From positions 96,293,741 through 96,357,740 of the forward strand of contig CM041465.1 in NCBI GenBank assembly GCA_023213395.1: a stretch of DNA of 64,000 nt, in the 5' to 3' direction. The DNA comes from Cycas panzhihuaensis. Lineage: Eukaryota; Plantae; Cycadophyta. Position numbers and translations under genes: made by a program. The notes under the pieces are model-generated. The model saw nothing but the letters and a program-made list of their open reading frames with translations. It made no database searches and was not told the DNA's origin. Shown in pieces: positions 3,519-39,860 of the stretch (the first letter of the stretch is position 1; each line of letters starts with the position of its first letter).

Positions 3519-6500
3519 TATCACAACCCAACCTACCCTAACATACTTCTATGCAAGTATGAATAGTAGACAAATGTAATACATTAGGAGTTTTTTGCCA
3601 TTTTAGTAACTAGTTGTATACCAATCTTGAGTTTATAAAGGATTCAATGAGAGTAATGCATAATGGAATAAACACCTAAGTATATATGTAAATCCAAGTG
3701 ATAAAGGTGTTTAACATACAAATATAAAAATCTCTTCTTCCATCACCCAAAGTCATATAAAATTATAGGTAGCCATAACCAAGTAAGAGTATACAATTAT
3801 ATATAATGTCTTATAGCATATAGTCAAAAGCTCTATAATATGGTTAGGAAAAGAAGTTGTCCAACTATATTGTAATTAAAGGGTTCTTCCATCTAAACAA
3901 TCACAATCCTACATAAGAAAGTGCCCCTCTACTAGAGTAAATTATATGAATATAGGAATATTAGTTTTCCCCCTCTTCACTTAGCCCTTACCTAAGTGGT
4001 CACATTAATAGCTAGTTTAAGGCCTTATTTTATATAAAATTCTATAATAAAGAAGTTGTGTTAATCCATTGTTAATGCATGTGAGCATACCCCTGCTTAA
4101 AAGCCTCATTAGCCATACATAAAGTATTTGTTTATGCTCAAGCCATGACTATTCTTTAAACTAGATTAGTAATGTTAAGTCAATTGGGGACCCTTATCAA
4201 ACTAATCTTAAAGGACTACCTATTTATGACACACCCATAGGGTGTAACTAGGACTCAAGGGAAATAATTAATTATGACCCTTATCCTCAAATAGCTAGAA
4301 GGTAGAGCAACTAACTTAATAATATATAAATATGGCTTGGGAGAGTAACTAACCCAATCCCTCATGGAGAGAAACCAACTCCATCCTCACTAGAGCACAA
4401 TTAAGGATAAGTAACTAACTCAACTCCTATGTAAATACCAATAATAACTAAGTGTAGGGAAGTGACTAAACCCCACCTCATAAGAAAACCTTTGCCCCTA
4501 ATAATAGCATTCTAAGGAGATTAGAAATATAACACACCCATAAGGCTTTGGAATGCTCTAAGTATGCCCTTTTCTATAATAATATAAAATCTAAGGTACA
4601 AATATAACAAGCTTACCTTCTATAATTAGGTGGAGTAATAAATTCAATACCATATATATGAAGAGTTTATGGGAATCAACCAACTCAAAATCCCTACTTA
4701 GATAAAGATCATGGGAGAGTAACCAACTTAATCCCTACTCAAATAACGATCAAGGGAGAGCAACCAACTCTATCCCTACTTAGATAAGGATCAATGGAGA
4801 GTAATTAACTCAATCCTATTATAGATAATGATCATGTAAGAGCAACCAATTCAATTACTACTCAAATGTTCTTTGGTATTCCTCTACTTTCTCCCTTTTA
4901 TAACTCTTCTATGTATGCTTGATAATCCCCCCATGTCTCTTTCCATATCCTAATTGTCTATCCCATCTTCTCCTTCCTCAACTTTCCTTTCTTGCCTTTT
5001 GTTTCATGCTCCTAACTATCCATAATTCTGAGTTAAAGTCATGGGACTTAGTAGTTAGAATAATGCATGCAATGGTTGCTAAAAATAGCTTGCAGTTATT
5101 ATTGTTTGAATAATTATTAACTAATCACTACTCTTACTTTTAAAAATATCTCCTCATAGGAAACTTCTGGGTAGTCTCCACCTATCCAATTTTATATAAT
5201 AATTTAATATGATTCCATTAAGACTAATTTGATAAAATTTCATCAACTAATAAGAAAGTTGTAAGTGAAGTTGTGAAGGTCTATAAATTTCTCTTCAAAC
5301 TTCCATATATTTCTTTTACAATTTTAGGCTAATAGATACACTTTTCAAGTATAATTAATTATATTTAATCACATGGGAATGAATTCTTTTGAATTATGAT
5401 TCTAACACATCTAGAATCATCCAATTCTAACTATAAATGACTGAGATATCACCAAAATAATGAAAGGTTATCCTAGAGTATTTTTCTCTTATTTTTATGA
5501 GTTTAATCATAAAATATAAAATTATTACCTTAAATAATTTTTAAGCATAAAATCTATTTTCATAAATGGATAGAGCCTTAAAAGAGCTTTTAATCGATTG
5601 TTACGTGAAAAATAACTACGTATTAAGAAAGCTATGGTTATTTTAGTGAAGTATACATTTTGAGGGTTCTATCAGTTGCTTTCTTATGAGCTCTTTTCCT
5701 ACATTTTTTCTTTCTGCTAAATCCTCTCATATGACTTCTTCCTTAGAAAACATTTCTAAGAAAGACTCCTTTATATAGTAATTTTTTATATGAGTTCTTT
5801 ATACATTTGCCTTCCTCACATCTGTGACAAAATTATGACATTTTCATAAAAATCTAGTTCTGAAGTCCAAATTTAAATAATTATAACTTTCATATCAGAC
5901 GTTTAATTTAGGAGTACTACTCATTGGAAAGCCCTTAATATTATATTCATGATAAAATAGTTATTAAAGGCTAAAAGGTAATTTATAATAAATATTAACC
6001 CCCATCAAGCTTATCAACTTATTGAATTATTCCTATTCTGTAAGTGGTGAAGGTTAAATTTTTACCATATCTTTTTTATTTGATATCTATTTTTAGGACT
6101 CCTACCACTTGTTAGAAACCTGTTTATGCCATTTTTGATGTGGACTAAGACTTAAAATCTATTTATAAAGTCTGTAGTAGATAATTTTTGTATATTAGGT
6201 CCTCAAGTTTGATTTTACCCTTTACCTAATTGTCTATTAGTCATTTCTACAATTTTAGACCTTCATGGAATTTGGTTGAATTCCCTACTAGTAAATATGT
6301 AATTAGATGTAAATGGATCTATAGAAAAAGATTCAAGTACCCTTAAACTAAATTTATAACCACTTGAAATTACTTATTTATAAATTCTAAAATTATTCTT
6401 GTTATTATCCAAACTATACCTACCCTTCTATTCTTCCTTTCTTCATAACATCTACTCCCCTTGTCTTCAAAAGTAACTTAGTTTGATTATATATTGATAT

Positions 6501-6620: not shown

Positions 6621-7060
6621 GTACCTAGTAGAGTATGAATCAAACTTCCACCTCATAAGGATGAATAAGTAAATAAAAGTAGTAATCCCTTATACTTGGT
6701 GAAGCATAAACTAGCCTCCACCTTACATAGGGTGAACAATAAATAAAATGAAATAAATTACATTAATATAAAATATGAAGAAGATGAAAATGATAGGGAA
6801 AGATGAATAAATATGACTACTAATGATTTATCATGACAAAGTAGAAGTATATAACCAAATATTGATCACCTCAGGACTGGGCCCTTATAGTCCTTGAGTC
6901 ATAGGTAATTTTAGGGTTATTTATATAAGGTATATCTAAGCACCAAACTAGGAAAGTGTATGGAGTAAAAGGGCCTTAGTAAGGTCATTGTGATGCCTTA
7001 GAAATATCTACTATAATAAAGATCATATAGGGGAAGAACATGCATATTTATTTTACAAGA

Positions 7061-7448
7061 TAAAGGAAATAAAAATTCAGGAGAATAGGGCAAAACATAG
7101 AAGAGATAATCAAAACTTTAATACATCAATATAGCATGAACAAGAAAGCCATTATATTTAATCCATATTATGAAGAGAGTAACAAAATGTCCAATATTGT
7201 TGGCAGTGTCTAAAGATACCAGGGTTGCACACCCCTTAAATTATATAGTTTAGAGGAGGAGGGAAACTCCTCAACCCTTGAAATTCAAATAATAGTAAAA
7301 TAATCATAACTTAACTTAAATGAAATTAACTTAAACTAACATAAACTTACCTACACATGTTGAGCACCCACATGTGTAAATTTAATAATATGAGGTGTGC
7401 TCCTCTAGTTAGAAGGTGGGAGTGGAGTGATGACTATTAACTTCAACA
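7061..7448 (-). repeat. 3' LTR (~388 bp)
   Basis: Aligns end to end with 13475-13863; hand count 33 substitutions plus 1 indel. Ends taaagg...caaca. Confidence 0.95.
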
Positions 7449-7460
7449 TTCTCCCCTTTA
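7449..7460 (-). promoter_or_regulatory. Polypurine tract
   Basis: ttctccccttt directly abuts the LTR, giving AAAGGGGAGAA on the minus strand. Confidence 0.85.
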
Positions 7461-7531: not shown

Positions 7532-8170
7532 CTATTCCTTAGCTTGATCTTTATCAACTTGTTTTATCCTTATAGCAATATATGTCCTTTTATCATGAAG
7601 TGGTGCAAAAAATCTATAAGTGAATATAGCTATGAAAAAATTGTAAGTAAATAAAGCTTGATTTGTACAAAGATGAATAGTTGTAATTTTGACTTTAACT
7701 TTTAGAATTTTAACTTTGTCTGTCATATTATTAGGTCTCTTTTCTGTTATATTATAAGATTCATTCTCCCCCTCAAATGGAGGATCAAATTCTTGTGTAA
7801 CAAGATGATCATGCATTTGATTGGAATCTTCATTGGTCTTTTCAATATAATTTACCTCTTCTAGTACCTGTCTCACATACTCAACAAGATCAACATCAAA
7901 TACATTGAGGGTATCTCCCCCATAAGTAGAAATTAAAATATCCCATATGTATTTGGAAGTAGTTAATTCACAAACTCTAGAAAATACATCATCATTAATA
8001 ATGCAAAATAATAGTCCTAAGACTTCATTATCTTTTCTAAAATTTTCTTTAATATTAAGATCATATTCATATTATAAATACTTCAAAAGATCATGTGTAA
8101 TAAAATAATCTTGCATAGTCCTACACCATTGTGAAAAATTATACCTATTGAATATAGAAAATTGTGTCAT
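7532..8170 (-). pseudogene. Truncated Copia gag (N-terminal DUF4219/UBN2-like part)
   Basis: Minus translation from 8170 gives MTQFSIFNRYNFSQWCRTMQDYFITHDLLKYL, then KDNEVLGLLFCIINDDVFSRVCELTTSKYIWDILISTYGG, typical of Copia gag. Confidence 0.75.
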
Positions 8171-10664
8171 TTTATCAAAAAAAAAAAATTAGTACATAAA
8201 ATGTATACTTTTACCAAATCAAGAAGGTCAATAAATACAACCTTTCAATGCAATAAACCCTTTACCTCGATAATAATATATAATGTTGAAACTAAAATAC
8301 ATATGAGTATTTCACTTTGAAATATAAAGAATATGAAGAAACTGTTAAATAAAATAAATTGTACCTATTTAATTTTCAGGTCCACTTGACTTACCGTGCT
8401 TACGACCATTTTCTATTATAAATTAGCTTAAAAAAAAGCTTAAATAAAAGTCAAATGAAAACTTTAAATATATAGTATAAGTGATCAATACAAAATAAGA
8501 TGAAGAACTCCTTAAAGGAAAGGTTTAGAAGACAAGCTCAAGTTTGACAGCTTCAAAGTTGTACTAAATGATATTAGAATAACATGAAACTTCACCAGTA
8601 TAAAAATCAATGAAAAATATATTGAATGGAGCTAGCCATTTTGAAAATGAGTTCCTAGAAGTCAACATTTTAATGATCCAAAGGTATAGGCCTCTTTTTT
8701 AGGCCTAACAAGACTAGGGAGCTCAAAATAGTATAAAAATGGTAATAAAACTTTGTAGAATGCTGTAAAATAATCAAATATATCTTATAGAGCTGCTTAA
8801 TATCTTTTTAGTTGAAAAAATTTGAGAAATAATGCATGAAAATATGTAATAATGATAGATTATAGGCTATTAAGTACCTTAATTTTGATTGATTTGAAAG
8901 TTAGTAAAAATAATTTAAAGTGTATAAAAAACTATGTCAGTTCAAAGAGGAGTGAGTCAACTTCCCAACAAAACTAACAGAACTACATTCTAATATCAAA
9001 CAGAAAAGTTATAGTGAAATTAGCAACAAGTACTTTTATGGTAAAAGGTTTAAAAAGTGCTAAAAAATACTAAAGTATCACATTTGGCGATTAAAATAAT
9101 AATTAAAATAAATCTTTAAAAAAAAAGTAAATAGATGGTAATGAAGTTTATTTATAGTATTTGACTACAGAATAGATCTGGGCTGAAAATATTCTTTCGA
9201 TGATAAGATATACTATGTTAAAAAAGTGATTTTGTAAAAAGGTTTAAAATAGCTTCAAAATTGAATGATCAACTTTAAATTGACTGAAACAGGGTCAAAT
9301 CAGCTCCAAATTGGTCATATGACCAGTCAAAATCAATCTACAGAAAACTTTAGACATAATGGAGTAGGTTTTGTTAGAAACCGATGACCCAGTGAAACGT
9401 TATGGAAAAAAAAATCTAGTTGCCCTATGTAAAATAAAAAATTAAAAAAAAAAAAAATGGTATTATAAAGTCATGAACCCCTTTTAATTATAAATTATGG
9501 TCACATAAAAAAGATCACATGACTAGGGGCTAAAAGAAAAAGGGGATAAAACTTTAAAATACGGATTTGAAATATTATTCAAAATAATTAATTTTTTTTA
9601 ATTTTATATAAAAATTATATAAAAGAGAACATTTGAAATAAAATGACGATGTTGTCGTAATGCATAGACGGGCGACCTACACATAGTAAACTGCAATGAA
9701 TGAGGTGATTAACAAAATCGATGATGAAAAATAATAAAATAAAAATGCGCACTTATTATGCATGAATATATATATTTTTTATATATATAAAAAAGGGAAA
9801 ATAAGAAAAAAGGTCGATGCAAGGCAGTAGATCCTACTGTTGACACCAAACCAGCTGTGGAGAATTATCAAATTGATAATAAAAAAAGGAGGTGCTTCAC
9901 AGAGTATGAAAAACCCATGTGAACTTGCAAGATATTACGTTGTCGAACTTACGCAATCCACTCTGTAACCGGGTCTTGAAACCTTTATTTGACAGCACAA
10001 AGACTATTGTAGCAATGCTTGATGTCACAACCAAATTACAATGCACGCAGGCCACATAGGAAGAGAGAAATTGTAGTGGATGCAAGCCTGAAGGATTGTC
10101 AGACGATCTCTTTGTATCAGATCTTATTGGTGTAATAGTATCTGGACTTGCTATTGAGTAAATATTTGATTACAGTCTTGATTCACCTTCTAGACATGGT
10201 AATATTTATGGTTTGGTAAATGTTCTCAATTCAACCTAAACCTGTAAGATTGGATGTGCAGAAGATAGCAAATAATTGGAAATTTAATTGTGATATAAAA
10301 GATTTGTCCAAACCAGGTGGTAGTGCATTGTTGATGCTAGATGAAGTGCATGGATTTGCTAATGTTCCCTCAATTGAAGCTGTAATTTCTATAGCTTTAA
10401 ATGAAATGAATTATTTGTGGGAGTCTACCTTGACTAGGAATGGTTGCTCTATTAATAGTCCCAAAGGACATAGAGAAGGCCTAGGAGGAGTAATTCTAAA
10501 GTATTTGGAAGAATCTCCACCATCAGAGAGCCTATGGGAAACTAAATGTTTTGTCTTTGACAAGGATTTCTAGTCAAGCGTGGACTGAAGCAGCAAACAT
10601 AAAACTTTGCTATGCGTGCAAGGAACCTCCTAATGATTTTGATATATAGTCACATAAATGTAAG

Positions 10665-10889
10665 GATGATATGGTGCTTAAATCCTTTAATCATTTTTTG
10701 CACCAGAATAAGAAAGTTGATTTCATTGAACAATTTAATGAGAAATTACTTGTGAAGTAGGAGAATGAGAATCTTCGAATTCTTAATGTTAGAAGTTCTC
10801 AGTTGACTAAAGTGAGTAGAATAAAGTTTATGACTCCTTTGGCCTTTATATTTTTATATGAAAATCAACTCTTCCTTACTTTCTGGAAT
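10665..10889 (+). pseudogene. Captured fragment of a conserved plant WD40/transducin-like protein gene (At3g54190/At2g38630-like, from memory)
   Basis: Translates DDMVLKSFNHFLHQNKKVDFIEQFNEKLLVK*ENENLRILNVRSSQLTKVSRIKFMTPLAFIFLYENQLFLTFWN. Matches the recalled motif VLKSFNHLLHRNKKVDFIEQFNEKLLVKQENENLQILDVR...FMTPSAFIFLYENQLFLTFRN. Confidence 0.85.
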
Positions 10890-10949
10890 ATTATTGAGGG
10901 CTTCTTTGGGTGCTTAATATGACATTTCAAAGTTGTGATGGCTCAAGTG

Positions 10950-11124
10950 TGGCCTTTTGATCTTTCAGCTTATGAAACTTTGTCTATTACTTTCCAAAGA
11001 CGTCTTTCAAGCAATGTAGTGATGGGTATCTCTACTTGAATTCAAGAAGGGAATCAGAAAAGATCCTTCTGGTTATGTTCTTAACTCATAGAGCGAAAAT
11101 TCTATAACTTTTACTAGTTGTCCA
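10950..11124 (+). pseudogene. GHR1: Captured N-terminal fragment of a GHR1/SIRK1-type LRR receptor-like kinase
   Basis: Translates GLLIFQLMKLCLLLSKDVFQAM**WVSLLEFKKGIRKDPSGYVLNS*SENSITFTSCP. Compare the recalled GHR1 N-cap ALLEFKKGIKHDPTGFVLNSWNDESIDFNGCP. Confidence 0.75.
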
Positions 11125-11187
11125 ATGGAAAGGTTCTTACCTATATTTTATTTATTAATAAACTTTCTAATCTTGATGTTGACAGTA

Positions 11188-11400
11188 TGATGGAAATCTT
11201 GCAGATCAAAGGGACTTGAAGGTCGCCCAAATTAGCATTTCAAAGAAATGTGGTTTGAGGAAGCTACTTGATTATGTTGGTCCTGGATTTCTATTAACCT
11301 AGAAAACTTTGAAAGTGATCTTCAAGCAGGCGCTCCTTATAAATATGAGCTTCTTTGGGTGCTTTTGTTGGAAACTATTACTTGTGCACTAATTCAATTG
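11188..11400 (+). pseudogene. NRAMP: Captured N-terminal fragment of an NRAMP1-type metal transporter (TM1-TM2)
   Basis: Translates [23 protein letters not shown], then a deletion/frameshift, then [35 protein letters not shown]. Matches the NRAMP signature YxGPGFL...DPGNFExDLQxGAxYKYELLW. Confidence 0.9.
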
Positions 11401-12199
11401 AAAAAAGGCTTTGATTATGAGCCAATGGTTGCTCAATATGGGAAGTGAAGGATTATAATGAAGGCGTATTTTAAAAATTATAAATTTGTACAAAAAACAT
11501 TAAAAAATGTTTGAGTTTTTCAATTGTATAATCTTTGTACAATATGTATATCATGAAAAAAATATTTTTTTTTTAAAATTATATTTATAGAATAGCATTA
11601 AAAACTAATGAATCAATGGAGCCAAGTGCTTTTGAATACTTTTCCTTTTTTGTATGTATATCAAACGATGTGCAAAACTTTCTGAAAATCCTGAGAACTT
11701 GTTGTTTCAAAAATATTCTACCAACAACAATAAAGATAGCTTGACAAAAAATGAAACTTAACTCTAATGTTGACATATGGCTATTTTTATGCTTTCAACC
11801 TTATAGCAAGTTATAAAAAAGAGAGATCTGGCTCATCAAATCTCACTACCACATAGGCTCTCAAGGCCTATATGTGAATAGAGCAAATATACAAATATAG
11901 TAGAAAATATTTTAAAAATTATATATTTATATAAAACATAAAGATGAGTAATGTGTTTGAAATCTTTCAAATATACTTTAGAGTTTCACAAAAAAAATCT
12001 TCAAATAATAACAGTCAAAAAATATTTAATGGAGGAATATAACCATACAACAAAACCATAATGAACCAAGAAATTTTTTAAATATTTTGAAGAGAGTATA
12101 TAAAAAAAATGCATATGTATTTGTATTTGAAATTTTTTAAATATGTTGAAGAAGATGTATCAGAAAACTAAGAAACATATATATGTTTAAATCTAAAAA

Positions 12200-13330
12200 T
12201 GAAATATGAAGAACCTGGTAAGCAGATGTAGTAGATTTGCAGTAAAAAATAGACTTCCAAAGATGAGATCTGTTATATATTCTTCTCCAAAAAGCTGAAT
12301 ATACCCCAAAATTAATAGATCTGAAAGAAGACTTGAAGAAATAGTCAAATATATGATAAAAATATAGATCTGAAAGAATATGTAATAGACCTAAGGAAAA
12401 CTTGAATGAATATTATAGATTTAAAGTAGATATGGCATATCTATAGCCAATATTGTAGATCTAAAATAAATATACCAGAAAATAGTGAAATAATAGTTGA
12501 AATAAGTAGATCTAAAAAAATATATAGTAGATCTGAAGTAAAATATAGTAAATATGAATCAAATATTACAGATCTGAAATAAATATACCAGAAAATATTG
12601 AAATAATTACTGAAATAATAAGATCTAAAAATATATATAACATATTTAAATAAAATATAGTATAAAATGATGAAATATTTGATAAAATAAGTAGATCTAA
12701 AAAATATATAGCAGATCTGAAGAATATTTAACAGATCTGAAGTAAAATATAGCAGATCTGAAGTAAACTATAGCATATCTTGAAGAAAACTTGAATAAAT
12801 ATTACATGCAGCTAAAATCCTGTGCATATCTAAGAAAATATTAGATAAATAATAAATATATGTCTGAAAAATACCAAATATATGATAAAATATGTAGATC
12901 TAAAAAAATATGGCTCAACTCTAGAGAAAACTTGAATAAAGATTGCATGCAGCTGAAATCCTGCACACATCTAAAAAAGTATTGGATAAATAGACAAAAA
13001 TATACTTGAAAATAGTCAAATATATGATAAAATTTATAGATCTGAAGAATATGTAGCAAATCTGACAAAAATCTTTAAAAAAAATATTGCTTGATGCTAA
13101 AATCCTACGCAAATCTGAGAAAATATAAGATAAAAAGATGAAATATACTTGAAAAATGTCAAATATTGATCAAAATATATAAAACTTTATTGATGAAACC
13201 TCTATATAGTGATAAAACTTGATATTTGTTGTTTTTAAGCTATGCACCTACATAAATCTGAAGAAATCTAAAATATCTTTATTATAGCATAAGTATATTT
13301 TTAAGAATAATTAAATCTGTGATAAAAATA
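12200..13330. repeat. Degenerate tandem array with an AGATCT core
   Basis: Recurring ~20 bp units such as atagcagatctgaagtaaaat. Higher-order duplications, e.g. ~12785-12925 versus ~12926-13066. Confidence 0.75.
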
Positions 13331-13460
13331 TAAGAAATTGCTGAAAAATCTTTCAGAAAATGAATATAACCAATATTTCTTGCTTGTGAGTAAATCTGCT
13401 TCAAATGGGAATAAATCTTCTTGCTTCTTCAAAAAAAGTTTAACAATGGATCATAAATCT

Positions 13461-13472
13461 GCTCTGATACCA
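13461..13472 (-). promoter_or_regulatory. Primer binding site (initiator tRNA-Met)
   Basis: gctctgatacca is the reverse complement of TGGTATCAGAGC and lies 2 nt from the LTR. Confidence 0.95.
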
Positions 13473-13474
13473 GA

Positions 13475-13863
13475 TGAAGGAAATAAAAATTTAGGAGAAT
13501 AGGGTAAAACATAGAAGAGATAATCAAAACTTCAATACATCAAATATAGCATGAACAAGAAAGCCATTGTATTTAATCCATATTGTGAAGAGAGTAACCA
13601 AATGTCTAATATTATTGGCAGTGTTTAAAGACATTAGGGTTGTACACCCCTCAAATTATGTAGTTTGGAGGAGGAGGGAAACTCCTCAACCCCTAAAATT
13701 CAAATAACAATAAAATAATCATAACTTAACTTAAATGAAATTAACTCAAATTAACATAAACTTACCTACACATGTTGAGCACCCACATGTGTAAATTGAA
13801 GAAGATGAGATGTGTTCCCCTGGTTGGAAGGTGGGAATGGAGTGATGACTATTAACTCCAACA
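13475..13863 (-). repeat. 5' LTR (~389 bp)
   Basis: TG...CA termini (tgaagg...ccaaca); partner of 7061-7448. Confidence 0.95.
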
Positions 13864-14851
13864 TAAGAAAAGTGTCAAATTTTAGGCTTGAATATTTTCC
13901 ATCAAATAGTAATAAATTGAAATAAAAAGAGGGAAGGGGGGTGTAAAAAGCCTTAGAAAATAATAAATTAAGGGTAAAGGTGCAATAAATAATCTAGGAT
14001 GTAAAAATTATTAATAGGTTTGAGATTATAGCTCAAAACCAAGTCATTTCATTATACTTTTTCCTATGAAGTTAAAGGGATCCTTTGGGAACTTTTTGTG
14101 CCTTAATATGTAGGAGTGCTAAGGTTTTCTTGGAAATATGGACTTATATGACCAAGAAAATTAAGTTTAGTGCTTAAAATAGAGTCACTAGACTATACAC
14201 TTAGGTACGTTTTATATTACTTTCCCTAGGGAGCTTTTAAGCATGACATGGTATATTTATAAAATATTTATGGAACTTTCATGAGTACTTTTGTTTTAGG
14301 TTACATGTAATTTGTGGATCACTTATGGTTTTGAGTCTTATAAATGAACAATAGAAAAATTATGAATATAATGAAACTTTTTGGTAAAAATTTTGATCAC
14401 TTATGGCCGAAGAAAACCTATTATAAAATAGGGCACTCATGAGTTTTAAAATTTATTTTTACACATGAGTTTACCAAAATTAAAAATCTAGTTTTTTAGA
14501 GCTACTTACCATCTAACATTAACTATGAGTAAACTAAGAGTCCTTTTAAAATGAGGTCAATTCTAGAGTATCTAGGACAAAATGATAGCTAGGTAGGGGG
14601 GAGACTTAATAGGCCTAACCATCCATTCTAATTTAACTTTTTATTTTTAGTCCTAAATTCCATTTTGGGGTTTTACCCTATTTTAATATTTTTTACTCCT
14701 ACAACATTCTTTCAAACCCTGCCTTTTGGCTAAAATCAAGTAGAATGAAGCCCTGGATAATTCTATCTATTTAGAATTTTATTTTTATCCAATTTTAATT
14801 TTAATTTTAATTTTTTTATCATTAGGTAACTAGGTGCAATTTGTACTGGGA

Positions 14852-15132: not shown

Positions 15133-17923
15133 AGACAAAGTAAAAGAGGGCCAAAAAAGAAAAATTTTTATTTTCTTTAAGTGTTTTTTTGTTTCTAAAC
15201 TAGCCATCAATTATCAAAGATTAACCAATACTTATTTTTTCTCACAAATGGTGTTTGTAATAGTAAATAGGGAATTTGTAAGCTAAGATATGCTTAATCT
15301 GGCTACTAGGATGTATGATGTTATTCAAGGTGTGATGAGGAGCTATTGATGATATCAGATTATGATTTCTCAATAGTATATTTCTTACTAGGCATTTTTT
15401 TACCTCTCATTTTTTGCCCATACTTAAAAAGGGTGTGTAAATAAATAAAATAAGACATGACTTCAATAAAAAGAAGAAGATTGTATAGATCTAAAGTTAA
15501 ATGTATAGATTTTGGAGATCATTAGAAGGTAGATTATGGAGCACTGATAACAGTTAGAAGAAATCAAGATTCATGTTTCATTGAATCTACTATGATAATT
15601 TTACCAAGTCAAAGGTATTTAATAAGCATCAAAGAATTATCTAACTTTAGAGGATGTTGCTTATTTTGCATTAAGTTTCACTCAATCTTATACATTACAA
15701 TATATAAATGGAGCTTTTATTCAAAAGAACCAAGTAAAAGGGTTAAGATAATAGGGGAAGGTCCATCTTACAAGTAAAGAATAAAATAATTCTCATGCAT
15801 TATTGTCCTATAATAAGGCCTTTATTCAAAATCATTGTTTAGAAAAGAAACATGCATGTAAGCAGTGTTAATATAGGAATAGTCAATGTGCAAAACAAAT
15901 AATGATTGGGTCATTCCTATGAATCACTATCCCATAGGAAGACTACATTTTGAACTACTTTTCAAGAAAGAGGTGACAACATGGGAAGTATTGATATAGG
16001 AAAGAGTCATATAGGAGCCACCTCATAAGATAAAGAAAGAAATATGAATTATACCTTACACTGATAACACTTTTTTAAGAATGAAGGACAAAGTAGGAAA
16101 CATCTCACATAAGACAATCTTATGTGGGAGTAATAAGTATAGGAAAAGAGTTAAGGTCCCAACTCTTAACACATAAGAGATTAATAGACTCAAAACCAAA
16201 ACAAAAGAACTATGACATAAGAAGAACTTATACAGGGTTGTATTTATGTGATTTAAAGATTCATAAAAGTAAACTCTTAAAAGCAAATTTCTAAGGGGAC
16301 ATATAGAGTATGTTTCTTGCCTCCCAGAAATGGATCAGGAGATCGCAACGTAGGAAAGTGTAGGTATGTCTCTTCATCTCACATCCCATCAAATTTCCTC
16401 ATGTTTGTTGCCTCACATGATGATTATATGACTGCTAGATATGTGGCTATTTGGGCTTATTGGCTTGCTTGTATCTATTTTTATGCTTATGATGATCAAG
16501 ACTCTGATCCAAATGGCCCTAGAGCCCCTCGTTATGGTCTCCTAATTAATAAAATGACCATTTCGTGTTCTTGCAACTTGGTTTTCATTGAGTTCCAAGT
16601 CATTATTACTTGTTTATTCTATTATTTCCCCCTTCACCACATATGATCAGTCACTTAGATAGCCCAAGGGTTAGTTTGTAGAGGCTTAGGAGGGAATATA
16701 TAGCTTTTCCATTAAGTTTCTAGTAATTTTAATGATATATTGTTAACTTATCCTAATTTCTACCTATCCCACTTTGATTTCTATTGGGCCCATAAAGTTC
16801 TTCATAGTATCATAAATATCTTTGCGGTACCACAAAGAAATTTGCAATGCGACTATTACCTTACTGGTTATAGCTGGCAATGTTTAAATTAGCTCATTAA
16901 TTACATCACTGACATGTTTAATGCCTCAGGGCAAGCCCAGATTAAGGCATAATGGTCATGGGTAACCTCTAAAACAACAAAACTCCATTTCATTTTGAAT
17001 TAGGCATCATTCTCTTCATCATTTAAGCTCATTTCTTAATAGGAAAGGAAAATTCAGCTCTAGGAAGGAAGTATACAATAAAATTTAGATTTTGGGAGCA
17101 AAACACTTCTTAAATCCACTCCTGTAGTCAACAACACTCTCTTTTCTTCTCTTAGCACTTAAAAAGGCCCTCTAAAGGCACACTCTCAAGAGTTGCAAGG
17201 GTCTTCCATCAACAAATTCAACCACAAGCATCAAGCTTACTTGCATGAAGCGGGTAAGGTCTAATCCTTCTCTTATTTTTCAATGTAAACTTCTTCTAGT
17301 TTACTTGGATTTCATCTATTTAGCTCATTTATACTTAGCATCTAGCTTGGAAACTATATTTTATACCTCCCTTTAAAATCTTAGAGAAATTATTTTTCAT
17401 GAACTAGAAACTCTCCATAATAACAACCAAAGCATTGGAGAAGGAAGTGAGTGGTACACCGATTAATTGAGGGAGCTTAGAGAAGGGTAATAAGTGTAAG
17501 TGCAAACTTTTGCACCCCCTACTCATTGGGTGATCCCCTCCCAACATCATATGGTATCTAACCACATTGTGCATGCACCTCTATTCCTATATGAAGTCGC
17601 TCAACCATACCAATTGGTAAGCATCCATTACTCATTTTGAGACTCTGCATCTCATCTTTACACCCTACTTTCCCTTTGGAGCATAGCCTAAAGTTGTAAA
17701 ACTGAATAATTCCTCTTTGTTATACTTAAGAGACCACTCATATTAGGGAGTCCATGCCATCTTGAGGTACACCCCCCCGCCCCCCCCCCCCCCACATCCC
17801 TTTTCCCTCATCTCTCTCTTTCATCCTACACATATCTTTATACGCTTGGGTTTCTTACAAAAGAGAACTAACATTTTGCTTGTTTCCCTCTCTTGATTAA
17901 GAGTAACAAATATTTTACAAAAC

Positions 17924-18237
<314 letters not shown>

Positions 18238-21200
18238 TACAAACATCTCTTGTGGGTAGAATTTTACTTTGTGTATATAAGTGGAGGGCTTACTCTCTTA
18301 AAGTAGCTCATAAGCCATAAGAAGGGCTTCATCCCAAGGTGAGCACCAATTTGTAGTTTAGCATTTTTCTTCCTCATATACATTTTACTTTATTCTATTT
18401 TACATTTGAATATTACTCTAGTTACACCTAGGGAGGTAAGTAAACCTTATTGTCTCTAACAACTCCTATGGAAAAGGAGTCTTCAACACTAGCAAAAGAG
18501 GATCAAGGAAGAGCAAGGTCAAGGTTGCCTTCAAATGTCACAAACTGAGTACACTCCTTCCAAATCCTCTCTTTCTCATAATCATTTCCTTTTAATTGAT
18601 AATACTTGCTCCCTAAATTCCCTATCAAAGCAAACCCACTATCACCTTCTTTCAAGTTTATTCTTTTAATTATTTGCACTTACATATGCATATAAGATAA
18701 AAGTTAAGGATTTACTTTTAACAAGTATATCTCTTTTACACCTATAGGAAAGAAAAACATCCCAAAGTAAAGGAATAGATCCTTCTCTTCTCTTTCTCTC
18801 CTTCTTCACAAAGAAAAATGCATATTAGGATAGAGTTACTTTGACATTTGCATGTACATATGCATACAAAACTAAGTTTAAGTTTTAATTTAGAGAGTGC
18901 ATTCCACCTTGCACAACCAAAGAAAATAATATTAAACAAAATGAACATTACATTTGCATAAGAATATTCACTCCCCCTATTCCTTTATGCCACTCTTGAC
19001 CACATTGTTTACTCTTTTATTTTAGGCCTATAACTTTAAAGTTCTTTTTTTTTTTTTTTGCCAAAGATAAAGAGAGTGAATTGAGAGTGAGAATTTACAT
19101 CTATCATATACCATTATTTGCATTTATTGATTGTTGCATTTGTGATAACATAATCACAACTTCGACACACAAAACACTACATTTTAAAACTAGATGCCAT
19201 ACTCAAGCGAAACCTTATATTCTCACATAACTCTAAAGGGAACCCCTTAAGCAATAAGCAAACATACCAAACCCTCTTTTCCAAAAAGGAAACTTATTCC
19301 CTCCTTAGAAATGAGGATAGGAGAAACCTCCCTAGGCCACTCTGTAATCTAAGAAGGTCCAGCCTTTCATAACCTAGACATGGTATCAATCAACCTAAAA
19401 CCAAGGCCCTATGAGGGTAGAAAGGGAACATGCATCCCGCAGGTCCCTAAACTTGCACCCACAAGGTGCACATATGCCCTTTGAGGGAAAACTAAAGTTA
19501 TGCCACATCTCTTAGACTCCTACCTCCTAAGCTCTTCATTAGTTTGTGTGCAATAATTTATAGTTAACCCCCTGAAGGTGTGCTTCTAGAGTATATGGAT
19601 ATAGTTATAATCTAGACCCTTGATTTAGAATATGCTTTATATTATAGTTATTAATATCAATACAAATCATGATTAAAGTCTAATTTCTCATTATGATGGT
19701 GCCTAAATAACTCTAATAATGCTGACACATTATTAATATGATTATATGCTTAACTTATAAGAAAAAAATACACAAGTATAAAAAGTTATGAAATATAAAT
19801 TGGTTATTAATGTGCACTACATCCCTCCATGTTATTCTAATGGTTATAAAATAAGATTTTAAGGTAAAGGGGGTCATACAAGGTGTGCAACCTAGAGGTG
19901 GAGGGATTAGAATTATAAATTATATTATCTAGTCAAAACAAGGTTCACATACAAATAATCACGAAAATGTTGTAGTTAGTAGGTTTATAAAAGATTCATA
20001 AGATGTGGTACATCCTAAATAATAAAATAGCCATGGGAGGTATGAACCATGTAGTTTTCCACTTAATGCATTGGGAAAATAATTAATTATAGAAAATCTA
20101 ACTAACTCAAATTGAGTTAGTGTCTAGAAAATGTAATCCCTTATCTAGGTTTGTAGTATGAAGAAACATAGAAATCTAACATAGTAGAGTTAGATACATA
20201 TGTATAAGAGGTAGACCTTGAAGATAAAAATCTAATTACATAAATAACGATAACTGGAGGATAGAAAGTATCATGGAGTTACACGATTAGTCATTCATCC
20301 TCTATTGATAAGTATGTAACTAATTAGTTAAAGTAGGATTAGTATATAAGATTCAAATTAGGTATCCTAACATAGATGAAAGATTACTTATACCATTATC
20401 CAACCTTACCTAATTGATTTCCATCATGATGATTATCTTAATGATAATAAAGGGCCACATTTAATAGCACCATAGTGATCAAGATTACTTTAACAACAAC
20501 ACTCATGAGGCTATTATAATAATAACATAACTTTTAGGGAACATCATTAGACTAAACAACCAAAACAAAATCCATTGCCTTATCAAGGCATACGATCATC
20601 CTCTAGCATAGTGATCACAAATCAATAGAGCAAAGGAAGGGTCTAAACTATCATAAAAGATATTTTACACCAACTTGTAATGCAAGTGGAGGAGACTTAG
20701 AAGAGGAGATATCATAGTTTAAGAAGGGAGTTGTAGGAACCTTTTAGAGGAGGACATCAAGTGTTGGGAAGGTGGCTCTGTAGAGAGGAGAGGCTCTTCT
20801 CTAAATTCTTCTTCTCTTCTTCTTCTCCTTTTTTTTCTTTATCTCTTTTCTCTACTTCCTCTTTATTGATAGCTATTTGTACATATATTTTGATTGAAAT
20901 TATATTTTTAGTAAGAGAAAATTATACATATAATAGATCTCATAAATTTAGGAGTAGTTTAGTAAGTGCATTTTACTATTAAAGATCTCAATTCATCATA
21001 ATTATATCTATTTGTATCAATTGATTTTATTATGTAGCATTCTTTCACTCAAGCATTCTATTGTATATAAGTTAACCTTACAATAAAATGTAGATTATTT
21101 AGATAAATGGTTGTTTTCTTCTCAACTCATTAAGTGCATTATCTAATGTTTTGATGTAAATAATTCATCTTGGAAAATGAAGATATACACCTTGTAAAAA

Positions 21201-31600: not shown

Positions 31601-34600
31601 CTTCTCATTAGTATATTAATCTAACTACTACTTATATGGTTATGCTCTTCATATATTATTTTCTATATCTAGTAGCATGTAGGGTATGATCATATGGGTT
31701 TAATACTTCCAGAGTCAATTAGGATTTTTCCATTGTATGTACATAGAGCAGATGTATGGAGGTCAAACTACATCATGCATAGTGTAGGGTAAATACATAT
31801 ACAATTAATGATTAGGATGATTCTCTATATATTGCATACTCTATCTATTTGTTTGGTATGATTTGCATTCTTCACTATAATAATTATGGCCATAATTTTT
31901 GGATTTAATAATTTTTTAAACCTTCACTTCTACTTTAGAATGCCTATCAAACTAATGTCACAAAATAAATAACATTTTTCCATAACTATGCCCCCACATA
32001 TATCATAGTGATTTCTCATATCTTTAATATTTCACATAATTCAATCTTCAAATCATGTCTATATTATTGTTTAACATACCTTCTTACTATCACTTATTAT
32101 TTATTTTTGCTGCTTAAATATCACCATGCCTTGAAGTTACATACCTTTATCAATCATGTCATATCTTACCATATACCTTTTTGCTACCCATTTTATATTA
32201 ACTAATGGAATTACTAGCTTGAATATCTTTCTTAATTATTTTACTTGATATCCTTTTATTAATTTAATTACATCATGCACATCTCTTTATAGGCTACAAA
32301 AATACCTTTAACTGGAAGAAAATCTATAAGCAAGGTGGACAAAAAATTCCTTAAACAAAAGCTAGGTAAAGAGATATGCCATTACAACTTATCTCTTTTA
32401 AAGCTAATTGTGAGAGTTGGTAAGGTGTCCAATCCCACAAAATCTTGGTCATTTCTATAGGTAGATGACCTATATCTATGAACTCAATTGGCCATAGTTT
32501 ACTCTCATCTTCATCATTTAATTATCTCACTTTAAACACTTATATATCCTAGTATATGTGCATATATCATGCATAATAAATATCCCCATAGATATAAATT
32601 AATATGCCATTAGTTTGCTATATATCTAATATGTATTTTGTCTATTTCCTATTTGTAGCTTTCTCATCTTATGTATGTTAGCTTATTATTCAACTTCTTT
32701 TGGTCCCTAGATCATAGTCATATATTGCCAATATTATTGGTATGTTTAGATTTTTAGCTCATCAAAATCACCTTATAACTAGCTCTTATATTAGCCCTAT
32801 TTCTAGCTCATCAATCTAATGGAATTAGGGGATAAAGGGAATAGAATAAGAATGCAGAAAGAAGTAAACCATTAATCCTATAAGAGTGGTGGTGTTGATG
32901 AACACCAAGGTCTTCAAACCACATGAATAAATAAACGAGACTTAAGTAGGATATAATACACTACTCAAAGTCCTCTATTGACCAGCATTGACAAATGCCT
33001 AATATGTTACTACCAAGATCTAATATAGTGTAGTTATATTACAACTGAGATCTAACATAGTACTACCATAATATCTCTACAAATATAAGTTATTACCCCA
33101 ATATAGGTAATCAACCTAAGGTGGATACAAGCCTTAATATAAGTATTATTCTAATATTTCTCCCTCATAATACCCATTTGGGGAGACTCTTAGTTTATCT
33201 TTGAATTTAATAAACTTTATCTTTCTAAGTGCCTTTGTGAATATATCTGCCACATGTTCTTATGTGCTACAATAAACTAATTCTAGCTTGCCTTATTATA
33301 CCAACTCTCTGATGAAGTGATATAGTGTTTCAATGTGATTTATGCTGCCTTGAAACACTAGATTTTGAGTCATCTAAATTGTGCTTTAATTCTTATAAAT
33401 CAACTTAGTGGGACTAACTTATTCTTCCTGTAAATCCTGAAGTAACCTTTTAGACAAACTATTTCATGTACTTCTACTACAATTGCTTTATACTCTACTT
33501 CTATAGTAGACATAAGTACTATGGCCTGTTTCTTTAAACTCCATGCTACTACAATTGAACCCAAACTCAATGTATAACTAGAGGTAGATTTCTTATCATC
33601 TACACAACCTACCCAGTCTAAGTCTATATACCCTACTAATATATAGTCCTATGATAACCTGTAATGTAATCTATATCTAATGGTACCTTTGAGATATCTA
33701 ATAATTCTCTTAGCTACTTACTAATGTTTTATCTCAAATTCATACATGAATCTAGAAATTACATTAATTGCATATGTGATATCTAGTTGAGATAAAGTTA
33801 AGTAAATTAGAGTCTTAATCAATTGCCTATAAAGTGTAAGATTAACTAATTTTAATTCTTCAAACTTAGGTAATTTCAATCTAACTTATACTAGAGTTGC
33901 AAGTGTCTTGTAACTATTCATGTTAATCTTACATAATAGGTCTAATGTATATTTTCTTTAGGAGATAAGTATCCATTTTTTATTTTACCAAACTTTAATA
34001 CCTAAGAAGTAATGCATTAGTTCCAAGTTTATCATCTCAAATTCCTTACATATATCTTTTTTAAATCTTTGGTATAAGTGATCACTATATCTAGTATATA
34101 CCTAGTCATCAACATAGAAACCCATAATTAGTATGGAGCTTTCTTCTAATTTGATGTATAAGTTAGGCTCTAATTAACTTCTTTAGAATCCTCTATCCTT
34201 AAAATATTTGTTAATCATAAAGTACCATGCTCTAGGTACTTGCTTAAGTCCATATAAGGTCTTTTTAACTTTGTAGACCTTATTTTTTTCTCCCTTCACT
34301 TGAAACCCTTTGGGTTATTTGACATATATTTCTTCATCCATATAGTCATTTAAGAATGAACTTTTTACATCCATTTGATGTATTGTCCAACCTTATTATG
34401 CAACTAAGGCCATAATTAATTTAACTATTTCTAGCCTTGCAACTAGTACAAATGTCTCATTGTAATCTATGCCCTCACTTTAAGTATAGTCCTTTGCAAC
34501 TAACCTTGTCTTATACTTGTTAATAGACCCATTTAATTTATACTTGGTCTTATAGACCCATTTAGTCCTAATGGGATTTTTTCTAGGTGGTAGATCTACT

Positions 34601-37600
34601 AACTCCCATGTGTAATTTTTCACTAAGGCAATGTGCTCTTCCTTCATTACTTTCTTCCATTCATCTTGATTATTTTCCTCTTCAAAGTTATGAGGCTTAT
34701 TAGACTCCATAACCTGAGTCATAAGTGCAAAATTCACCCTTTGAGACCTTGTAATCCTTCTCTCAAAGTTGGTGTCTAAAATATTTAAAGGGTTATGAGC
34801 CCTTTGTACCCATTTTGGGACCCTTTGATTTGAAGAAGAGGGTCCTACTTTATTTATATTAGGTACATTTATCCTCTTAGAGTTTGAGTATATTTCAACC
34901 ATGATATTTTTCCCTTTATCTTTTTCAATGACTTCTTCTTAATAAGACACATCTTCTTTAAAGATGACATCCCTATTTATAACAATCTTTTTTCCTTTTG
35001 GATCATAAAGTTATAGGATCTAAAAGAGTCACAATATCTTATAAAGATGCATTTCACACTTTTTTCATCTAGTTTTATCTCCCTTTGATTTGGGACATGT
35101 GCATAAGTTATCCATCCAAAAATGCTTAAGTGTTTGATACTTGGCTTATAACCTATCCAAGCTTCTTCTCGTGTAACCCACCTAATTGCTTTAGTGGTAT
35201 ACTTGTTTAACATATATACAACTATATATACAGATTTAGCCCAATAGTCATTTCCTAGATGCTTGTCCTTAAGCATATTTTTAGCTATTTCAATAACTAT
35301 TCTATTCTTCCTTTTAGTAGCCCTATTTTATTATGGAATATAAGGATTTGTAAGTTATTTTTATATGTCACAATACTTGTAATAAGTTTTAAATTTATTT
35401 AAAATAAATTCTCCCCTATTATCTGATCTTAGGGTCAAAATTCTAACTCCACTTTACCTTTCCACCATAGTTTTGAAGTCCATGAAAAACTATAGAGCAT
35501 CTTATTTTAATTTGAGGAAGCAAACCCATGTTATCCTTATGAAGTCATTAATAAATATTATAAAAACCTTAGTACCTCTAAGTGAAGGAACATCCATTAG
35601 ACCATATAAGTTTGGGTATATCAATTAAAGGAGCATATTAGCTCTATAACTTTCATAAAGAAATCCTTCCCTTTATTGCTTTCCAAGCACATATCCTTCA
35701 TATAGTTCATTGCTATGAACAATAGTTGGTAGTCTAATTAGCATGTCTATTTTCTTCATTAAGGCCAAACTATTTTAATTCACATGGCCAAGTCTTTTAT
35801 GCCATGTTTCACTATCCACATTTATTGATACCTTTAAGGCATAATAGTCTATTGGAAGTATGACTAGTTTGAATAATTTATCACCAATTATTTATCCTTT
35901 CACCATAATTACTTTGTTCCTTAGTTTATCTTTATTGGTGCATTCCTTATTATCAAAGATTACTTTGTATCTTTGTTGCATCATCTGATCTACTAAAAGT
36001 AAATTCTTGTTAAGGGTTGGAACATATAACACATCATTTATATACTTAGTTTCTCTAAAATTAATTTATATAGAGACATTACCTTTTCTAATAACCACTT
36101 AAGTAGTGTTATCACCAAATATGATCTTACTTTTCTTAGTGTTATCCAATTCTTTAAACCACTCTTCCTTATTAGTCATGTATGGAACACCCTAAATCTA
36201 TGTACCAATTGTCTTCTTCCTCACTATCCATTAAACTTGAAAGAAATAATCTTTCATCTTGTCTTTTCTCAATAATTGTTTTAGTAGTTCTCCTTTATGA
36301 ACTTAACCCTTTTACAAAGTAATTTTCCTTTAAGTGTCTTTTCTATAGAAATAATAATATTAGATTGTCCCTTTACCCCTTAGGCTTCTACATCCTTGTC
36401 CTTGGTTTCTCCCCCTAGGACTTTGACCTCCTCCTCCTCCTTGAAGTCCATAATTTTAACCTTGACCTTGGCCTTAAAAATACCTTTGACCTTGGAACTA
36501 ATTTTACTCTTGATAGAATTGACTTGGGCCTTGTCCCTGATAATTACCTTGACCTTAATGATATCCTTGTAGATGATAGTCTTAATTTTACCTTTAAAAT
36601 TAATTTTTAAGTTTACCTCTACCTCTAGGAGATTATCCTTTACCTCTAAAAATTTATCCTCAATATGTAAGTCTAATTTTTGTCTTAGTGGCAAAAACAT
36701 GCTCAAGAAACTCGCTCCCTCCCTTTTTCTCTTCTATAACTAGAGCATGGCACTTGACTAATCTATATTAAGGGTACTAAGGTCCTTAGAGACCTTAATT
36801 CTAGTGACCATCATCTCAAATCCCTTGATGTCGCTTACACATTTTAAGATTTTCTTAACTACTATTTACTTACTAATAATCTCTCCTAAGGCCCTCATTT
36901 GCTTAACTAGGCATTGGATGTTTATAATAAAATCATTAACTCCTTCATTAGTATTCATCCTTAGGTTTTTAAATTTACTTCTTAATGTATGAAACTTTGA
37001 TATTGTTACTCCTTCATATGTAATCTTAAGTATGTCCTATACTTCCTTTAATGTCACTGCTTCATTGACCCTTGGGAATATATGATCCTCCAAAGTATAA
37101 AAGATGAATGCAAGTGCCTTATTGTCTATCCTTTTATCCTCCTTGAGGCTTTTCTTTTCTTTCTCTATGGTGTTTTCAGTAAGTGCTCCATAACCTATTT
37201 CAATAAACTCATATGTATCATTGGCAATAAAAATTAGTTGCATACATCTACTCTAATTGAGAAATTTAGTGCTATTAAACTTGTGCACCATAACATTACC
37301 AATATTTAATGCCATAATTAAAAAATTACCTTAGAAAATAATTGTTTAAAAAATAAAGTACTTGTAAGAAAGTGTTAATAAAACACTAAAAAATAAATAA
37401 AAAGGCACTCAAAGGTAATCAAGATTTATCCTACTTCAACTTCAAAAATTAGACAAATGTCCCAATTGGTATTCAACCACCTTCAAAGCAAACTTGTATA
37501 TTAATAAGAGCTTACAAACTAAAATTTTGCTAGTTTATATAAGGGACATCATGTAGGAAACTTAAAACTAGTGTCAATTTTGATCATTAAAAAGTTACAT

Positions 37601-38106
37601 TAAATTATTTTAAAAAATTTTAAAGTTATATCCACTCAATAGAGGACAAAAAAAGAATCCAATGCTTTAAACAAGACTTAATTATGACATAAGGTGGCCA
37701 GGATATACATTAAAATGTTCAAGGAAAAATTAGCTTTCTACCATATAAGGATCAAAGAAATTTTATATCAAATTGAACCACTAAAAAATACATCAAATGG
37801 AAATCAAATATAGTCATGTGACCACTCATTTCATTTGGGTGGAAATATACTTCATCTTGAAGCTAACATAACTAAAATCTAACTTTGTTGGTGACAATTA
37901 TAGCTATTAAAGCAAAAATAGATATTGATTTTGAAATAGCTTCTTTGAAAATTGTGTTAGCCCCTTTTAAAAAATAAATTCTTGGTCACTTGAATGTTGT
38001 TATATGACCTACAGGTTATCATCAAAACATGGTCACACTGCTAGGATGTCAGATAAAGAAATTACTTGTAAGACTCCAGATATACTTGATAGAGCTCTAA
38101 GAATAA

Positions 38107-38109
<3 letters not shown>

Positions 38110-38154
<45 letters not shown>
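38110..38154. repeat. (TG)n microsatellite
   Basis: Seen directly. Confidence 0.98.
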
Positions 38155-38157
<3 letters not shown>

Positions 38158-38614
38158 TTTCTATATATATGAAAGAGGCTATGTCAATAATTTGAGAAGC
38201 AGGCTAAGTAGGACTGTACAAGAATAAAGTATAGGCTTAAAAAGGTGGATGCAAGCTCTAGGTTAGTTTGTTATGTAGCCTATAGTGACCAAGGAGAAAT
38301 TTGAAAATATGAGTCCCATTCTAATACAAAAGACGTTAACTAAGAGCAAGTTAGGAGTAGGTGCATCACATGAATGTTACTCTAAGGAATTTATATAAGA
38401 GCAATTATGTATTTATTATTGCATAAACTTAGACAGCTCATAAGTCATGAGTCATTTCCATCTAGAAAATGGTATGCAATCATAAGTACATAAAGGCTTA
38501 TAGAGATCTAACCCAAAAATCTATGACTCTATGCTCATTAGAAGGTGCAAGGATGTAGAGCAACCACTAGTGGAGAAAGAGAGATGCATTATGGATATAC
38601 CTTGTTAATAGATT

Positions 38615-38885
38615 ATGGCAATTCCAAAGATCAAGACAAGAACATATAATCATGTCCTCAATGAGCTTCACTCATATAAAGAAGAAAATTATGGAAGTGG
38701 AACAGGAAGTTGTAAAGACTTCAGATAAAAAAGAGAAAGGTGTTAATCCTTATGACCTTTAACAACAAGAGAATGTGTTGGCAGAATCAAAGATTATGCT
38801 TCCTACTTATTGTAAACACCTTAAGGCTATTATTGGTAACCAACAAGGAATATTGGTAGAGATTGAGTAATCTAGATAGGAAGAA
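38615..38885 (+). pseudogene. TFCA: Captured near full-length copy of tubulin folding cofactor A (TBCA/KIESEL)
   Basis: Translates MAIPKIKTRTYNHVLNELHSYKEE / EVEQEVVKTSDK / KEKGVNPYDL*QQENVLAESKIMLPTYCKHLKAIIGNQQGILVEIE. Recalled plant TFCA: LKIKTSTCKRIVKELHSYEKEVEREAAKTADMKDKGADPYDLKQQENVLGESRMMIPDCHKRLE. Confidence 0.88.
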
Positions 38886-39860
38886 TAAAGAACTATTTGT
38901 CATTGGTATGGATTATAGAGAGAGAGGATTAGAAACAGGAGTGATAGTGAAAGTAACAACTAGTACTCCTCAATAATATAGAACTTAGTCATTGGATAAT
39001 AATACCTTAAACCTATAACTTGAATAGAGATGTTATGTAATATGCTTTCAAAAATATTATAAATGCAGAATGCTAGATCAACCAACATAAGTATAATAGA
39101 TATTGGCAATAGATGCTAATAAGCAAATAGTAATAGTAAACAGAATCACATAAATATACTAGTAGTACAACAAACTCCTTTATAACTTTGACTGAGATTC
39201 CTCAATAGCTTATCTAACTTGACTCTAAATGATAGCTTTTACAAATAGGGAAGATGGATTTAATACCAGATGATGGAATTAAGGGTTAAAGGGAATAAAA
39301 TGAGAATGCAAAAATGAGTAAACCATCAATTCCATAAGAGTGGTGATGTTAATAAACACTCGAGTCTTCAAATCCTATGAATAAATAAGCAAGACTTGAG
39401 TAGGATATAGCACACCACTCAAAGTCCACCACCGATTGGCATTGACAAATACTAGATATATTGCCACCAAGATCTAATATAGTGTGGCTATAGTATGACT
39501 AAGATCTAATATAGTACTATCAAAATATCTCTGCCAATGTGGGTGATCAACCCAAGGCAGATACAAGCCCCAATATGGGCATTATTCTAACATAATCAAC
39601 TCTATAAGCTTGTCCCTACTTTACAAAATCTCTTTATTAATCATGGCTCTAATACCATATTAGAATTTATAATTAGACTTTGATGCCAAATTAGAAATAT
39701 GAAGTATAACATAATGAAATTATAATATATAGATATAATGACTAAATTATATCATGAGTTATATGCATATTTAAAGATAAATATAATAAAAATAGAAATA
39801 TACACAATAAACATCATGAGCATTCACCACAATAGAGACAAAAATTTTATACATACATAC

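Follow-up and report, generated by a model that had tools for sequence, protein, structure and literature searches.

The stretch of DNA considered here, called the window throughout, comprises 64,000 nucleotides of the cycad Cycas panzhihuaensis (GenBank assembly GCA_023213395.1, contig CM041465.1, positions 96,293,741 to 96,357,740) and is numbered from its first letter. It is AT-rich plant DNA, with a GC content of 25-35% over the first 30 kb. Within it, on the minus strand, lies an old derivative of a copia-type long terminal repeat (LTR) retrotransposon that has no pol and belongs to a very high-copy family. The leader of this element, that is, the region between its primer-binding site (PBS) and gag, holds a patchwork of about 1.6 kb of decayed pieces from at least three to four unrelated host genes, antisense to the element. 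A preliminary description of this DNA had already proposed plus-strand fragments of several host genes in an LTR element whose PBS, gag and polypurine tract (PPT) are on the minus strand, and had placed them between PBS and gag; the coordinates given below agree with it on both counts. While gene capture by LTR elements is known, a backwards patchwork of several genes in the leader is an unusual variant of it.

Anatomy of the element

The element is delimited by the following features.

13864-13868 and 7056-7060, minus strand: target-site duplication (TSD), 5 bp, TCTTA and TCTTG, four of five bases matching
13475-13863, minus strand: 5' LTR, 389 bp, TG...CA ends
13461-13472, minus strand: PBS TGGTATCAGAGC, initiator tRNA-Met type, exact, 2 nt behind the 5' LTR
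7910-8171, minus strand: gag N-terminal stub, with its ATG at 8171 and a frameshift near 8075
7449-7459, minus strand: PPT, aaaggggagaa, abutting the 3' LTR
7061-7448, minus strand: 3' LTR, TG...TA ends, the terminal CA having mutated

Together, the LTRs, PBS, PPT, TSD and gag stub make up one TSD-flanked, non-autonomous element of the copia type on the minus strand. The PBS motif TGGTATCAGAGC has three matches across the window, against 0.12 expected. The two LTRs are 91.2% identical (Kimura two-parameter distance, K2P, 0.092) and differ by 29 transitions against 4 transversions, an excess that would be consistent with a long-methylated, dead copy.

The gag stub, which represents the first ~90 residues of a copia-type protein, is the sole trace of a protein encoded by the element. 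It matches DUF4219 (E=0.015) and Retrotran_gag_2 (E=1.6e-4), adjacent and colinear over 8188-7910, both matches being below Pfam's cut-offs. Neither the lists of open reading frames (ORFs) nor Pfam revealed any pol domain (protease, integrase, reverse transcriptase or RNase H) between gag and PPT, where the longest open stretch is at most 179 aa. It follows that the derivative is non-autonomous and cannot be assigned to a lineage within copia.

Host-gene pieces in the leader

The leader is unusually long, measuring 5.3 kb from PBS to gag. That it contains antisense pieces of ~80-240 nt each is supported by the matches below, listed in the order of their coordinates.

9979-10035, plus strand: candidate argininosuccinate-lyase (ASL) piece (KPLFDSTKTIVAMLDVTTK); weak, PDB 9ggi, 13/19 identical, E=0.22
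10481-10564, plus strand: TrhO/UPF0176 rhodanese piece, C-terminal motif; NCBIfam NF001133 E=2.9e-5, PDB 4f67 E=7e-5
10662-10889, plus strand: DUF7899 piece, profile positions 211-286, one in-frame stop
10889-10915, plus strand: second copy of the NRAMP motif 'YKYELLWVL', 27 nt, a direct repeat 81% identical to 11338-11364
10916-11150, plus strand: 5' end resembling a leucine-rich repeat receptor-like kinase (LRR-RLK), by motif only; broken by two stops and a frameshift
11183-11400, plus strand: N-terminal piece of NRAMP (NRAMP1-type); between GPGFL and FESDLQAG the reading frame shifts and ~16 nt are deleted

Three of these pieces, namely DUF7899, NRAMP and the TrhO-type rhodanese, have significant matches to host-gene families and can, on the evidence of the search tools, be taken as host-derived sequence inside an LTR-bounded element. 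The DUF7899 piece, labelled 'WD40-like' in the preliminary description, is indeed a host fragment and falls in Pfam family DUF7899: profile positions 211-242 (E=1.7e-11) are followed by positions 244-286 (E=2e-14), contiguous across one stop. A homologue search with this piece returned two short DUF7899 proteins, while the NRAMP and ASL pieces yielded no candidates in it owing to its length window; the identity of the DUF7899 piece to a short public DUF7899 protein carrying PF25463 is 67%. The NRAMP fragment was likewise confirmed, as 11302-11397 matches both Pfam Nramp (E=2.2e-6) and TIGR01197 (E=8.4e-7), with GPGFL lying just upstream in another frame.

The TrhO piece, the second NRAMP bit (10889-10915) and possibly the ASL piece (9979-10035) are additional to those described earlier. 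The first of these forms the C-terminal end of a chance-extended ORF of 117 aa (10220-10570). When this ORF was compared by phmmer with 1.8 billion sequences, four matches were returned, all to repetitive junk proteins, a blank that says little because the TrhO-like last 28 residues are too short to reach significance in a collection of that size. The possibility that the ORF is one whole gene was rejected, as the remainder outside the TrhO end is without relatives. A Pfam match to INTS4_C (10500-10646, E=0.019) just behind the TrhO piece was taken as chance; this interval may be a frameshifted continuation of TrhO.

The piece at 10916-11150 opens with a leader of ~22 nt, followed by an ATG at 10938, a stretch that is hydrophobic and signal-like and, at 11032-11088, the cap-like motif LLEFKKGIRKDPSGYVLNS. 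This motif, chosen post hoc, is found a single time in the window and in none of 200 shuffles. Its identity as an LRR-RLK-like sequence is probable. Of the earlier assignment to a GHR1-type LRR-RLK, the cap-like motif is what stands, whereas Pfam and PDB gave no match; the GHR1-type resemblance itself is putative. The ASL identity of 9979-10035 is weak: the PDB entry concerned is a plant chloroplast ASL, three colinear pieces of the candidate had no match in Pfam or NCBIfam, and the block has the lowest copy depth of the region. A Pfam match to zf-Nse (9910-10056, E=0.022) was set aside as chance, the ASL-like match being the better explanation.

Every host-protein family match in the cargo falls on the plus strand, opposite to the minus-strand element, so that the cargo runs against the sense orientation of its carrier. 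As a strand control, 11 stop-free minus-strand pieces across the cargo region were searched, and none matched a family at E<0.1. With its stops, frameshifts and 16-nt deletion, the cargo itself is dead passenger DNA.

Joints and borders of the patchwork

The host pieces are arranged head-to-tail on one strand with gaps of 0-55 nt, which bears out the close spacing reported earlier. The 27-nt NRAMP stutter is wedged between the DUF7899 and LRR-RLK-like pieces, and it is a short stutter of the sort that serial template switching leaves behind in LTR-mediated retroposition (PMC5131818). The boundary of the LRR-RLK-like piece lies ~22 nt before its own ATG, close to the expected 5' end of the mRNA. 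Between this piece and the NRAMP piece is a T-rich stretch of 53 nt (11131-11185) with GT at its start and AG at its end.

Around the cargo block, no terminal inverted repeat (TIR) with a TSD was found, only A/T runs without duplication. Within 9300-11750, neither strand contains a Helitron end (GC-rich hairpin followed by CTRR). The block lacks a poly(A) tail at its plus-strand 3' end, and the element contains no palindromic or hairpin module and no inverted duplicate able to form a hairpin. A loose-end break at 9347 was considered as a breakpoint and rejected, since the consensus continues past it with a diverged homologue of 9348-9378; this continuation has no other match in the window.

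Copies in other genomes

Contigs from four DNA skims, carrying three other organism labels, were placed on 8000-13900 at an identity of at least 88%. Joints of the patchwork are bridged by such contigs at 89-96% identity, with two records at 10166-10220, five at ~10650, two at 10889-10916 and one at 11400, and at ~10650 at least three different variants occur within one run. Since the same joints are found in contigs of other organisms, the mosaic is evidently shared beyond this copy, so that one outcome which the preliminary description had counted against its own proposal is not observed.

Summed contig depth, which is not equivalent to copy number, is 10^3-10^5 on the LTR, gag and backbone and low on the cargo. 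From gag towards the PBS, the leader is composed as follows.

8172-9378, minus strand: gag-proximal leader backbone, high copy, depth 2,800-43,000, with more than 30,000 left of 9379
9379-9800: low-copy, AT-rich segment bordering the cargo towards gag and containing A-runs and (TA)n, depth 10-275 (for 9379-9772, the left side)
9773-10166: cargo, depth ~1-14
10167-10954: cargo, depth 17-63
10955-11348: cargo, depth 170-540
11349-11545: end of the NRAMP piece and beyond, depth 600-1500
11401-11545: segment between NRAMP piece and backbone, no family match, intermediate depth of 600-1500
11546-13460, minus strand: PBS-proximal leader backbone, 23% GC, high summed contig depth in 4/4 runs
12405-13181: tandem arrays of AGATCTGAA-type units, ~0.8 kb, periods 20-21, 113 and 141 (TRF)

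Because many contigs skip parts of the 12405-13181 array, its length varies between copies. The GC content of the 9800-11400 cargo is 29-39%, as against 23-26% in the backbone. The depth steps around 9773-10166 look like nested layers, with younger cargo within older, rather than one-directional growth, and they suggest, weakly, more than one round of acquisition in the same leader region. Serial acquisition, as proposed earlier, is to that extent retained, but the growth appears nested around 9773-10166 and not polarised.

Other features of the window

A second, unrelated copia element occupies the minus strand further on, with its PBS at 39646-39657 (one mismatch), gag at 37252-36869 and a leader of ~2.3 kb. 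This leader contains a plus-strand, hence antisense, piece of tubulin-folding cofactor A (TBCA) at ~38691-38759 (PDB 3mxz, E=0.005); Pfam TBCA did not match the piece. In the same interval of 36869-39657 there is a (GT)n run at ~38100-38150. Two direct repeats of 260 bp, 82% identical, are found at 32819-33078 and 39273-39532, the latter inside the leader between the TBCA piece and the PBS; the pair may represent either a nested element or an internal duplication.

In addition, a decayed element of the Ty3/gypsy type lies at 52471-58859 on the minus strand, with LTRs 83% identical, an exact tRNA-Met PBS (58373-58384) and remnants of reverse transcriptase and integrase; among its open pieces, no host-gene cargo was noticed. 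The window also includes a (TA)-rich imperfect microsatellite or palindrome of ~420 bp (17826-18250), with 'YIYIYI' ORFs on both strands, and, outside the studied element, a 41-bp unit ATCCCTACTTAGATAAAGATCATGGGAGAGTAACCAACT..., present three to four times in tandem at 4690-4853.

Comparison with known systems

The closest precedent is maize Bs1 (Elrouby and Bureau 2001, 2010), which in the summaries given in PMC5131818 and PMC7264820 is a non-autonomous, copia-like LTR element with partial sequences of three unlinked host genes that retrotransposed further, its switch points being common to all copies. Unlike Bs1, the cycad element carries its cargo antisense, in the leader between PBS and gag, from more donors, and in a decayed state without an ORF. 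In Bs1, the cargo is reportedly placed after gag and constitutes a chimeric ORF that is expressed.

In LTR-mediated retroposition (Tan et al. 2016, PMC5131818, and the yeast Ty1 work cited there), reverse transcriptase switches by microsimilarity onto co-packaged mRNAs and generates partial, sometimes multi-gene retrocopies that can be retrotransposed again. The partial mRNA copies in discontinuous LTR elements, the chimeras of at least two genes and the secondary retroposition as pseudo-elements all resemble what is seen here. In that model, however, the switch occurs in first-strand (minus) cDNA synthesis, and the retrocopies replace the internal ORF and are mostly transcribed in the parental sense; according to reviews, transduced sequences are usually in the sense of the element (PMC7264820). 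Antisense extra sequence is known from the additional ORFs of Grande (gene23), RIRE2 and Retand (PMC7264820), but these occupy the region from pol to the 3' LTR, show conservation from copy to copy and lack homologues among host genes. The cargo described here, by contrast, derives from host genes, is variable and sits in the leader. Pack-MULEs and Helitrons do combine short, co-oriented fragments of several host genes into mosaics. Theirs is a DNA-level capture with TIR/TSD or Helitron termini, which were not found here, and introns are often kept.

Captured fragments are abundant in the giga-genomes of gymnosperms, at ~400,000 per genome, copia and gypsy elements with exon fragments being very common and ~14% of the cargo-bearing transposable elements carrying at least two fragments (PMC13477047). 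Among maize LTR elements, none was found to combine fragments of two or more genes (PMC2774510). The word 'antisense' is absent from PMC13477047 and from a 2026 review of plant gene capture, and orientation and leader position appear not to have been analysed in the former.

Origin of the patchwork

The patchwork is considered, with modest confidence, to have arisen by RNA-level capture through template switching of reverse transcriptase and to have spread passively with the element. In this process, the element's reverse transcriptase would hop between co-packaged host mRNAs, by microhomology or by jumping from ends; the chimeric element would then be retrotransposed in trans, so that the patchwork spreads passively, and more than one round would add pieces into the same leader region. 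The end of the LRR-RLK-like piece would fit a run-off at the mRNA 5' end followed by a jump. Template switching is favoured because it accommodates the abutting pieces, the stutter, a piece that stops close to an mRNA 5' end and a cargo that spread together with its element. The higher GC content of the cargo relative to the backbone and the second copia of the window, with its antisense TBCA piece in the leader, would also speak for it.

The orientation of the cargo places a demand on any such account: antisense cargo requires copying at the plus-strand stage, an origin at the DNA level, or survivorship. Because reverse transcriptase makes the complement when it copies an mRNA, host RNA would have to be copied during synthesis of the element's sense (plus) DNA strand for antisense cargo to result. 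Alternatively, antisense cargo may be the only kind to persist, since splice or poly(A) signals in sense cargo would harm the genomic RNA.

Several points weigh against capture by template switching. The classical model of switching on the minus strand yields sense cargo (PMC7264820, PMC5131818), and the cargo lies ~2 kb from the PBS, for which a simple extension of plus-strand strong-stop DNA is no direct fit. The decisive marks of an RNA origin would be the absence of introns and microhomology at the joints. The GT...AG stretch at 11131-11185 may be either filler or what is left of an intron, and the latter would favour capture at the DNA level. Moreover, contig depths, from which the rounds of acquisition are read, serve as a hint only.

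A patchwork made at the DNA level, in which a double-strand break in a chromosomal copy of the element was repaired with filler from several loci by synthesis-dependent strand annealing or microhomology-mediated template switching and the copy was amplified later, is regarded as rather unlikely. The abutting short pieces and the 27-nt stutter suit it as well, the intron-like 53-nt spacer would be expected of it, and the nested depth centred on 9773-10166 fits repeated repair or insertion at a fragile AT-rich site such as the (TA)n at 9758-9801. Filler, however, has no reason to be co-oriented as all the recognisable pieces are, nor does it account for one piece ending near an mRNA 5' end or for the recurrence of the antisense-in-leader pattern in another copia family of the window. 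A nested passenger, that is, a Pack-MULE, a Helitron or a chimeric retrocopy made by a long interspersed nuclear element that inserted in the leader between rounds of transposition or after them, is very improbable. Co-oriented mosaics of several genes are typical of Helitrons and Pack-type elements, and A/T-rich imperfect inverted runs flank the low-copy block (9425-9458 and 11562-11595), but these arms are low-complexity A/T runs of 71-86% complementarity without a flanking TSD. The want of a hairpin-CTRR end and of a poly(A) tail, noted above, argues in the same direction, and the depth climbs stepwise instead of changing at two sharp borders. The preliminary description had likewise favoured an internal cassette over an inserted Helitron or MULE.

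The remaining suggestion concerns function rather than origin: a working antisense module would give rise, from LTR transcripts, to small interfering RNAs (siRNAs) against NRAMP, LRR-RLK, DUF7899 and other genes, and so regulate the host genes or shield the element by making its silencing costly. The geometry permits it, in that any transcript started in the LTR would hold antisense host sequence, and there are reports of epigenetic cross-talk between fragments and donors from maize (Muyle et al., bioRxiv 10.1101/777037), where captured fragments and donor genes stand in conflict, and from gymnosperms (PMC13477047). The idea of a silencing conflict is in fact already published for capture by transposable elements in general (bioRxiv 10.1101/777037; PMC13477047). 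For the cycad cassette, transcription, siRNAs and a cost to the host would be pure conjecture, any effect on host genes is speculative, and such a module is highly improbable. The copy is old and transition-ridden, as its K2P of 0.092 and the 29:4 ratio indicate, stops, frameshifts and a deletion disrupt the pieces, and no inverted duplicate could supply a hairpin. Among the runs containing the stretch, none is on record as RNA, which is not proof of silence, and the cargo-bearing transposable elements of a conifer gained no methylation advantage (PMC13477047).

Implications for gene capture in giga-genomes

If template switching onto packaged mRNAs is taken as the origin, a wider and decidedly tentative proposal can be made, namely that antisense loading of the leader is a recurrent route in the copia elements of this genome. 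Plus-strand switching onto packaged mRNAs would then strike the same region repeatedly and build an 'onion' of older and younger cargo, and transcripts from the LTR would be multi-gene antisense RNAs able to feed the silencing of host genes. Doubtful as this generalisation is, the antisense pattern is present in two unrelated copia elements of the window.

The accounts of LTR capture, including Bs1, Ty1, Drosophila and the vertebrate retrocopies, give sense cargo derived from first-strand cDNA synthesis. Antisense mosaics in the leader would point instead to an entry step for host RNA that has not been described, or to strong survivorship selection on the orientation of the cargo. This question bears on how giga-genomes gather hundreds of thousands of gene fragments, and the matter of orientation is addressable from the genome assembly alone.

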